The notes beneath the pieces are model-generated. The model searched no databases and was not told the DNA's origin. It saw nothing but the letters and a program-made list of their open reading frames with translations. From Octopus sinensis (taxonomy: Eukaryota): a DNA stretch of 64,000 nt. The stretch covers positions 19,344,001 to 19,408,000 of the forward strand of contig NC_043007.1 in assembly GCF_006345805.1 (NCBI RefSeq), given 5' to 3'. The translations under genes were made by a program, and so were the position numbers. Positions 17,603 through 20,600 of this stretch are shown here, in pieces (positions within the stretch are counted from its first letter, which is position 1; each line of letters begins with the position of its first letter).

Positions 17603-20600
17603 CTGCAGGAAGAACAAATAAACAAGGAATAAAAAAAAATGTCATTAAGTCAAAGAAAATGGAAATCAATGAACAGATACAATTTAAAAATGCATTATGT
17701 AACACATATGTATATATATATATATATATATATATATATATATATATACATATATATATATAGTTAATCCAAACATGAAAACACAAAGAGAAAACACAGC
17801 AACGTGAGGACGTGGAACAAATATAGTATTATTGGACGCTCAGGAAAGAAGGAAAGAAGGAGGGTTTAACGTTTCGAGCGGAGCTCTTCGTCAGAAACAT
17901 AGGAATAGGAAAAATCCAAAGAAGGGAAGACGGAGGAAAAAAAATCGCCAACGTTATACACGCGGTCACATTTTAAAATATATATATATATCAAAATAAG
18001 CAACAAGTATATCTTTGGTAATGTGGTACGATCGTTTCATGTTACTTCATTTTATTAAACATTGTAAGTATTACATCAGTTTTAAAATGTTGAGCAATCT
18101 TCAGCCATTTATAGAAGTCTTCTATCAAACGGACAATACATATACTTATTTCCATTTCGTTTGCCAACATTATAAAGAGAGTAGATATACAGACAGAGAG
18201 GTTGATTCGATTGTTAAGAACATGATAGTATTAAAATTTACCTTCTGACTATAGATTTTTCCTTTAGTTATTTAGATCTGTTAGTGGGGATGGAGGGATT
18301 TTCGGTTGGATGGAGACAAAGAATTTTTCTATTTATAGATATAGGAAGAGGTAAACTAAATGTCAAAAGTTATTCATGTTGAAGTTTAAGATTCATTTGA
18401 ATCTAAATTTTGCTGAACTTATATATATGTATATATATATATATATATATATATATTATATATATATATATATGTATATAAACATAATAAAATAGGGTAA
18501 TAATAATTATTATTACCTGTGGCCTAGCACAAAAAAATAGGGAAATAGTTGAAATGGTAAACGTTTTTAATTTTCATTCCTTTTGTGAATTTATCCTTTT
18601 TGGTGGTTTTTGAGATTTCTACTGCTCTTTCTAGCACAACGCTTTCCTATTTGGAAGCTGCTTATTGTATTTCTATATGTATATATATACATACATATAT
18701 ATATATAGAGAAGAGCAGAATGGAGTAAGTGGAGCAAGAAGACATGCGAAAACGAAAGTGTCGCTGAAGAGGTCACAGATGTGTGACAAAAGATTTCCGG
18801 GCAATGGACATGAGTTAGAATAAGAACAATAATAAACAAGTGAAGAACAAATATATAGTGCATGTGTTTATTTGGTAAACAGAAAAAAAAGTGACCATCT
18901 TGAAATACAACAATATCTGTTTCAACACACGGTTTCACATCAGGAATCTTGCAACACAAATTGATAAATGTATATATATATATTATATATATATATATAT
19001 ATATATATATATATGTATATAAACATAATAAAATAGGGTAATAATAAATTATTATTACCTGTGGCCTAGCACAAAAAAATAGGGAAATAGTTGAAATGGT
19101 AAACGTTTTTAATTTTCATTCCTTTTGTGAATTTATCCTTTTTGGTGGTTTTTGAGATTTCTACTGCTCTTTCTAGCACAACGCTTTCCTATTTGGAAGC
19201 TGCTTATTGTATTTCTATATGTATATATATACATACATATATATAGAGAGAGAAGAGCAGAATGGAGTAAGTAGAGCAAGAAGACATGCGAAAACGAAAG
19301 TGTCGCTGAAGAGGTCACAGATGTGTGACAAAAGATTTCCGGGCAATGGACATGAGTTAGAATAAGAACAATAATAAACAAGTGAAGAACGAATATATAG
19401 TGCATGTGTTTATTTGGTAAACAGAAAAAAAAGTGACCATCTTGAAATACAACAATATCTGTTTTAACACACGGTTTCACATCAGGAATCTTGCAACACA
19501 AATTGATAAATGTATATATATATATATATTTATATATATATATATATATATATAACTGTTGACAGTTTTTTTTCAACCAATACAGTGCAAGTTATAAGAC
19601 AAAATACAAATGGATGGTTTGTATTTTTAGATTACATTTTTATATTTTGGGGTTAGAACCCATATCCAGGAAATCTTTGAAAGAATGGTGTTGTGAAAAT
19701 GCTGAATAGCATTTTGTCTTAATGTTATTAGTTCAAATTCCATGGAAGTCAACTTTGCCTTTCATGTTTTTGGGGTTGATAATATAAATTCTGGTCAAGT
19801 ACTGAGATCAATGAAATCAACTATTGCCATCCCTCAAAATTTCAGGCCTTGTGCCAATAGCAGAAAGGATTATTATTATTGTTGTTATTATTACTATTAT
19901 TATTATTGAGTGAGAGAGCAGTGCATGCCATCAAAGTGACACTGGGGTAAAATATACGAAGCCCAGTATACCCATCATGACTACCCATCTGATAAGGGTA
20001 CACCAGGCACAGGCATCGCAATCATATGTGCGCGACATGACGATCTCGTATCAAGATAAACAGCACATGACCTTCCAGGTGGGGCCCAGTTAGAATTTTC
20101 TTCAGGTCGAGTGGCCCATCCCACTCAATAGGTCCCTGAATAAGGATTGTTTAAGGATGTTGAATGAACCACCTATGTTTCCAAAGGTGAATTATCCAAA
20201 CCTCTAAGAATTCCTTTCAACACATGACTATGATGTTCCCCCACTACTTCTGCTCGTGATCAGAGATGCACATATCGTCAGCCACTAAGGGACATGCTCA
20301 ACTGGTTAAGGTCAAACAACTGACAAGCAAATCTGTGGTATTGGGCAGAATATTTGCTGTAGCCCATCTTTTATACCAAGACAAAACAATGTATATGATA
20401 ACACTTCCTATCAGTTAAGATCAGAAGCCATGAGAGCCACTGCCTGGTACTGCATCAGGGCATATGGTGGCAGCGGTGGGATTATTATTATTATTATTAT
20501 CATTATTATTATTATTATTATTGTTATTATTGTTATTGTTATTATTTACACTGTTTTGTTTCATTCTTCTTCCAGTAAGTAAATTACTTTCTAACAAATA

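Follow-up and report, generated by a model that had tools for sequence, protein, structure and literature searches.

The present analysis concerns a stretch of 64,000 nucleotides of the Octopus sinensis genome (RefSeq assembly GCF_006345805.1, contig NC_043007.1, positions 19,344,001 to 19,408,000), referred to below as the window, and a short motif resembling a hammerhead ribozyme that lies in an intron of a PLC-beta gene. All coordinates are those of the window, which has a G+C content of 36.7%. By tblastn with four full-length PLC-beta proteins, eleven exons of the gene are located on the minus strand from 59005 to 22294, corresponding to residues ~30-455, and the PI-PLC-X domain is identified by Pfam in the exon at 30027-29821. 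Further downstream, the (E/D)AHPE motif found in the X-Y linker of reference PLC-beta proteins occurs within ...TDAHPEYIF..., a sequence encoded by the exon that begins at 17602. The motif and two of the exons are placed as follows:

17481..17602, minus strand: PLC-beta exon of the X-Y linker, bounded by the acceptor AG (17604-17603) and the donor GT (17480-17479)
17864..17898, minus strand: hammerhead-like motif, copy a of repeat family 1, seen by direct reading, in descriptor scans and with a covariance model
25922..26002, minus strand: PLC-beta exon of the X domain (tblastn), directly upstream of copy b of repeat family 1

The initial annotation had placed the motif on the sense strand of the PLC-beta gene (minus strand, 17898 to 17864), about 260 nt from a PLC exon. 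Both statements hold, since copy a ends 262 nt upstream of the acceptor and the exon start at 17602 is confirmed.

Read on the minus strand from 17898 to 17864, copy a is GUUU-CUGACGA-A-GAGC-UCC-GCUC-GAAA-CG-U-U-AAAC, and its parts in hammerhead numbering are:

17898-17895, minus strand: 3' strand of helix I, GUUU (2.4-2.1)
17894-17888, minus strand: core box CUGACGA (C3-A9, N7 = C)
17887, minus strand: bulged A between A9 and G10.1
17886-17876, minus strand: helix II, with GAGC at 17886-17883, loop UCC at 17882-17880 and GCUC at 17879-17876
17875-17872, minus strand: core box GAAA (G12-A15.1)
17871-17868, minus strand: C15.2 and G16.2 at 17871-17870, U16.1 at 17869 and U17 at 17868
17867-17864, minus strand: 5' strand of helix I, AAAC

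Helix I (GUUU/AAAC) and helix II (GAGC/GCUC) have 4 bp each, and helix II is closed by a loop of 3 nt and includes the pair G10.1-C11.1. Every residue required in the core is present (C3 U4 G5 A6 N7 G8 A9, G12 A13 A14, A15.1, U16.1, and H17 as U). Direct reading thus bears out the two helices, the intact core boxes CUGANGA and GAAA, and the extra A that had been annotated. A palindromic helix III of ACGU had been proposed as well; A15.1-C-G-U16.1 is indeed self-complementary, but helix III is impossible within one molecule and a second copy is needed for it. Judged from its sequence, copy a appears to be a type-I minimal hammerhead ribozyme (min-HHR), in which helix III would form only in a dimer through the palindromic ACGU and cleavage is predicted between 17868 and 17867. 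The wording 'fully canonical' was therefore an overstatement, since copy a has neither a monomeric helix III nor a loop 1 and is matched by none of the Rfam hammerhead families. There were no hits to these families at the gathering score in the whole window, none at E<=10 with queries of 601 nt and 86 nt around the motif, and no match of copy a to the HH9 and HH10 models.

Within the window, chance does not account for copy a, since the counts expected from shuffled and random sequence are low. A loose descriptor (a 4-bp helix I enclosing CUGANGA, at most one extra nt, a 4-bp helix II with a 3-8 nt loop, GAAA, a further 3-8 nt and H) matched the window 3 times, while the number of matches expected on the basis of 300 dinucleotide shuffles is 0.0033. 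With a strict descriptor, built from the published features of min-HHR and including the palindromic 15.1-16.1, copy a was the only match in the window, and none was found in 300 shuffles or in 40 Mb of first-order Markov sequence. An analytic estimate for the min-HHR descriptor is ~2.5e-9 per position, that is ~3e-4 per window, or roughly a dozen per genome of 2.7 Gb, which we take to be the genome size.

Copy a belongs to a short repeat that is present three times in the window, at 17.9, 25.7 and 47.3 kb. These units are mutually homologous (alignment z-scores of 40, 15 and 8), and each is flanked by TA-rich microsatellite:

17762..17975, minus strand: family-1 unit of copy a, ~214 nt, pyrimidine-rich on the minus strand, flanked at either end by (TA)n, located in the intron just before the 17602 exon
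25595..25775, minus strand: family-1 unit of copy b, ~180 nt, with a 34-nt deletion
47185..47385, minus strand: family-1 unit of copy c, ~170 nt homologous to copy a (z = 15), its terminal ...AACT adjoining (TA)n

Copies a and b are 81% identical by column over the unit of ~180-215 nt, and their homology is bounded on both sides by the TA-rich microsatellite. The motif of copy b (25702-25668, minus strand; GUUU CUGAUGA A GAGC UCU GCUC GAAA CA U U AAAU), which was recovered by the loose scan and lies ~145 nt downstream of the exon at 26002-25922, has an intact core with all required residues, a helix I with one G.U pair, and ACAU, which is not palindromic, in place of the helix III sequence. 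Since three of the four differences between the motifs of copies a and b are CpG transitions, copy a is the less decayed of the two, and it is the best preserved family-1 copy in the gene. A covariance model was made from the motifs of copies a and b and run unfiltered over the whole window; E-values from such models are rough. It matched copy c at 47318-47275 (minus strand) with E = 2.7e-5. Copy c lies in the intron between the exons 48918-48799 and 44777-44697, and its motif (47314-47279; CUUU CUGUUGA A GAGC AUAC GCUC GAAA CG U G AAAG) departs from the required core at two places, with A6 changed to U and a G at position 17. Helix I of copy c is still paired through a two-sided change from G-C to C-G, and the motif is more conserved than its flanks.

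A weak covariance-model match (E ~1) lies at 11790-11831 on the plus strand, CUUU CUGAC--AG..GAAAUGUC AAAG, the helix I of which is the same as that of copy c; it is possibly a decayed copy on the opposite strand. Just upstream of copy a, in the same intron and between TA microsatellites, there is a direct duplication of at least 300 nt (18505-18804 and 19047-19346; 99% identity, spacing of 542 nt), which looks recent and local. For the family-1 unit, an origin from a short interspersed element (SINE) was rejected, since the unit has no tRNA, 5S or 7SL match. A rod structure like that of a retrozyme was rejected too, the fold of the unit being no more stable than that of shuffled sequences (z = -0.72).

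A second family of repeats with hammerhead-like motifs was reached through the covariance model made from copies a and b. Two plus-strand matches, 16485-16536 and 30949-31000, had E ~0.1 with this two-sequence model and ~3e-10 with a second model, for which all five sequences were used, and the latter also recovered an inverted partner for each (16147-16198 and 30816-30867, minus strand). These four matches are located in two foldback elements, 16103-16579 and 30775-31010, the arms of which are reverse complements of each other, with one minimal hammerhead-like motif per arm:

16485..16536, plus strand: right arm of foldback 16103-16579, ACAC CUGAUGA A GGCUG [10 nt] CAGCC AAAA CG U U GUGU, with G12 changed to A
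16147..16198, minus strand: left arm of foldback 16103-16579, CUGAUGA A GGCU..AGCA GAAA UG UU GUGU, with one pair of helix II broken
30949..31000, plus strand: right arm of foldback 30775-31010, ACAC CUGAUGA A GGCUG [10 nt] CAGCC GAAA UG U U GUGU, with both core boxes intact
30816..30867, minus strand: left arm of foldback 30775-31010, CUGAUGA U GGCUG..CAGUU GAAA UG UU GUGU

Between the arms of the foldback at 16103-16579 lie (ATT)n/(AAT)n and two tRNA-like SINE heads, inverted relative to each other (16278-16389).

Outside the motif, no similarity between family 2 and family 1 is detectable (alignment z ~0). The architecture of the motif is the same in both families, with the core boxes, the bulged nucleotide, G10.1-C11.1, GAAA followed by (C/U)GUU, and a 4-bp helix I. 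Six of the seven motif copies have A as the bulged nucleotide, and one has U (three A and one U among the four copies of family 2). G10.1-C11.1 is found in three of the four family-2 copies and is the sole invariant pair of the five-sequence alignment, and helix II is one bp longer in family 2 (5 bp) than in family 1 (4 bp). At positions 15.1-16.1, copies a and c share ACGU with one copy of family 2, the other three copies of family 2 have AUGU, and copy b has ACAU; AUGU is self-complementary with G.U pairs, while ACAU does not form a palindrome. In the five-sequence alignment, all 40 cells hold standard pairs and seven of the eight pairs change on both sides between the families, and when the partners are slid by 1-3 columns the pairing falls to 17-45%.

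Minimal hammerheads of this type have been described in the terminal repeats of Penelope-like elements (PLEs) and, far more often, as solitary copies across metazoan genomes (Cervera and de la Pena 2014, Mol Biol Evol 31:2941, PMC4209133). They have no helix III or loop 3, have a conserved G10.1-C11.1 and a palindromic 15.2-16.2, form many consensus families per genome with compensatory changes, and occur in pairs 100-700 bp apart on opposite strands (PMC4209133). The octopus motifs resemble them in being of type I, in having an open helix I that spans 4 bp, in lacking helix III and loop 3, and in showing a single unpaired nucleotide after A9, directly before the pair G10.1-C11.1, as well as a palindromic ACGU. 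The resemblance extends to the presence of several families in one genome with compensatory changes between them (here two), to copies that are mostly solitary, to opposite-strand pairs a few hundred bp apart, and to TA-rich insertion sites. PLEs have (TA)n as their preferred target, and their inverted 5'-truncated copies form inverted repeats (Craig et al. 2021, PMC8557442); the (TA)n flanks of the octopus units and the inverted arrangement of motif copies agree with these habits. PLE families are present in Octopus species (PMC8557442), and Penelope elements together with 235 Rfam hammerhead hits were reported for the giant squid genome (PMC6962438). Copy a is best explained as a min-HHR borne by a short interspersed octopus repeat, as in PLE terminal repeats and their truncated or non-autonomous derivatives, and we put the probability of this reading at roughly 0.8.

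If the repeats do descend from PLEs, the design of the ribozyme would have been selected for the element's own RNA. Multimeric transcripts of the element would be processed as a double hammerhead, in which two copies give each other helix III and helix I in trans. In such a helix I, the 2.x strand of one copy would pair with the 1.x strand of the other, and each core would cut the site of the other copy; this pairing is derived from the hammerhead numbering and is consistent with the dimer drawn in PMC4209133. Copy a at 17.9 kb would then be a solitary insertion into a (TA)n tract of the PLC-beta intron.

Several observations weigh against a PLE origin. No open reading frame (ORF) for a PLE reverse transcriptase or a GIY-YIG domain was found beside any copy or seen elsewhere in the window, so that the link to PLEs rests on resemblance and the literature, and the octopus units differ from the published cases in being known without an attached PLE ORF or terminal repeat. 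Helix II has 4-5 bp, as compared with the 6-8 bp typical of schistosome and Drosophila families. The covariation amounts to about one contrast between two families and one change within family 1, in an alignment that was fitted to the structure, and the whole sample consists of three copies of family 1 and four of family 2. Selection on the motif could not be claimed from copies a and b, and this idea was rejected, since CpG decay explains their differences. All three family-1 units are intronic in PLC-beta and in sense orientation, an arrangement that is unexplained, three of three not being significant. Searches for more copies added little: exact-pattern scans found none in viral contigs or in bacterial and archaeal genomes, a metagenome scan with a probe from the repeat flank gave 16 chance matches, none of them with the repeat, and peptide searches with the ORFs running through family 1 and through family 2 gave no match. 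Ten ORFs of the window were not in the protein collection that was searched, and the sequence strings occurred in full-text literature only in unrelated primers and a microRNA.

The energetics of copy a were considered with nearest-neighbour energies, which ignore the tertiary stabilisation of the core and are indicative only. In the predicted fold of the 35-mer, UGACG of the core is paired with CGUUA (-7.7 kcal/mol), and the two-helix hammerhead state makes up ~0.1% or less of the monomer ensemble. For the homodimer of copy a, the double hammerhead is at -5.7 kcal/mol and the best dimer at -22.5 kcal/mol. For copies a and b, the double hammerhead is at +1.4 kcal/mol and the minimum free energy (MFE) at -23.3 kcal/mol, the former being unfavourable because ACAU leaves a C.A mismatch. 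In contexts of 126 nt and 214 nt, copy a folds no better than shuffled sequences and the hammerhead is not formed in the prediction. These values agree with the weak activity published for the class: single min-HHR motifs showed no detectable self-cleavage in vitro, and dimers and trimers showed weak cleavage only, mostly at non-physiological Mg2+ (PMC4209133). On the model energies and by analogy with these data, an isolated monomer of copy a in the pre-mRNA would most likely have no meaningful rate of cleavage and no role in the expression of PLC-beta.

It had been suggested that the hammerhead on the sense strand of the intron dimerises with another copy and cuts the PLC-beta pre-mRNA before splicing, thus tuning the output of the gene. 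The intact core of copy a with U at H17, its self-complementary ACGU and the further sense-strand copies in the same pre-mRNA speak for this idea, and conserved intronic hammerheads of amniotes, for which a role in mRNA biogenesis has been proposed according to their citation in PMC7229834, offer a precedent. The latter, of the HH9/HH10 type, likewise lie in the sense strand of an intron, so that competition between cleavage and splicing is conceivable; however, they have full and stable helices, are active as monomers and are kept at orthologous positions, in contrast to the repeat-borne, minimal octopus motif. The possible partners of copy a are poor. The nearest, copy b, has ACAU, which cannot pair properly with ACGU, and with 7.8 kb and two or more exons between it and copy a downstream, its intron would probably be gone before copy a is transcribed. 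Copy c has the A6U change and G17. A homodimer would require two pre-mRNAs to meet, and even then the double hammerhead is far less stable than the best alternative dimer. In the MFE structure of the monomer, UGACG of the core is paired with CGUUA. Together with the absence of detectable cleavage in single min-HHRs, the weak cleavage of their dimers (PMC4209133), a repeat ancestry that already explains the motif, and a Xenopus study in which related elements are depleted from introns (bioRxiv 10.64898/2026.07.22.740005), these points leave the tuning of PLC output unsupported, and we regard it as highly improbable. Also highly improbable would be a version in which copy a pairs with a second PLC-beta pre-mRNA or with abundant nuclear family-1 RNA and cuts the nascent transcript at 17868/17867; if it were true, minimal hammerheads scattered over the whole genome would restrain the genes in which they lie, to a degree that depends on their concentration.

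Two further accounts concern the repeat itself. Family 1 may consist of dispersed solo monomers of a non-LTR (long terminal repeat) retrozyme, tandem arrays of which would be transcribed, self-cleaved and circularised elsewhere in the genome. Non-LTR retrozymes, too, are small non-coding units, rich in A+T and a few hundred nt long, with a type-I hammerhead that has a weak or palindromic helix III and works as a dimer (Cervera and de la Pena 2020, NAR 48:5054, PMC7229834). The family-1 unit, with ~200 nt and low G+C, is of a size known from metazoan retrozymes, for which solo monomers are a recognised form (bioRxiv 10.64898/2026.07.22.740005). An origin of retrozymes from the terminal repeats of PLEs has been proposed, and they are thought to be mobilised by PLEs (PMC7229834). 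This account overlaps with the PLE reading and does not exclude it. On the other hand, retrozymes occur as tandem arrays with canonical helices, usually with loop-loop contacts, and as circular RNAs, whereas the octopus units are solitary, carry a minimal hammerhead and are not strongly structured; no tandem copies of the units are found in the window, and the loop 1/loop 2 tertiary pair of canonical type-I retrozyme hammerheads is missing, and the fold of the unit is unremarkable. A retrozyme origin is unlikely. The other account is coincidence, in which a repeat of some unknown class happened to hold a hammerhead-like string and amplification made it seem non-random. The shortness of the motif with its 4-bp helices, the missing Rfam match, the missing PLE ORF nearby, and the differences between copies a and b, which need no selection, are all compatible with it. 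Nevertheless, at an estimated ~2.5e-9 per position, a given repeat consensus is unlikely to contain the motif by chance, and in the same 64 kb a second, unrelated family has the same architecture, including features beyond a mere match of the core. In addition, the motif of copy c is better kept than its flanks and the pairing of its helix I survives a double change. Coincidence is therefore distinctly unlikely, and a min-HHR carried by a PLE-like repeat is preferred over these alternatives.

With respect to the bulged A of the octopus motifs, a natural and active viroid hammerhead tolerates one unpaired nucleotide at the same place, after A9 and before G10.1 (De la Pena and Flores 2001, as cited in PMC4209133). 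The viroid motif differs in being a full hammerhead with three stable helices in a circular RNA pathogen.

No description of octopus hammerheads or of min-HHR repeat families in octopus was found in the searchable literature, and Octopus is not among the genomes described there. The present analysis offers an initial, limited account of two families of octopus repeats with minimal hammerheads. Extrapolated from at least seven motif copies in 64 kb, it suggests that the two families are very abundant in the octopus genome. If they can be tied to octopus PLEs, they would provide a cephalopod case for the open question of what use weakly active ribozymes are to their elements. A ribozyme core that looks like a textbook example in an intron would here be the signature of a retroelement family, which guards against over-reading similar hits in invertebrates.

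A further hammerhead-like motif is found outside the two families:

8152-8194, plus strand: hammerhead-like motif at the centre of an element at 8090-8278, which has terminal inverted repeats of 33 nt and is embedded in long (TA)n arrays

This motif, CCAC CUGAAGA UUGU[8]ACAA GAAA C GAUU G UA GUGG, has a helix III of 2 bp with a tetraloop and U-A at 10.1/11.1, and it gave no Rfam hammerhead match at E<=10. It may represent a third family or a chance occurrence.

As for the coding content of the window, Pfam confirmed PI-PLC-X alone among the larger non-repetitive ORF fragments, and a transposase-like reading of 43.0-43.6 kb is for that reason not claimed. The closest match to a PLC exon in the sequence searches was a metagenome contig of 717 nt in ENA. 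The 3' part of a non-LTR retrotransposon ORF, broken by frameshifts, lies at 61035-61849 (minus strand); several Octopus bimaculoides proteins, some of which have RVT_1, share 70-86% identity with it. Within introns of PLC-beta, there is a full-length 5S rRNA match at 42313-42431 on the plus strand, antisense to the gene (70 bits, E = 9e-13); its closing helix has several non-canonical pairs, and it may be a pseudogene or a 5S-derived repeat. The introns also hold a ~1-kb array of a degenerate short repeat (21260-22280; LSIY... in translation) and a minisatellite of ~650 nt (24040-24690) with long Pro/Ser-rich ORFs in several frames. Over the entire window, (TA)n and (CA)n arrays are extremely abundant.

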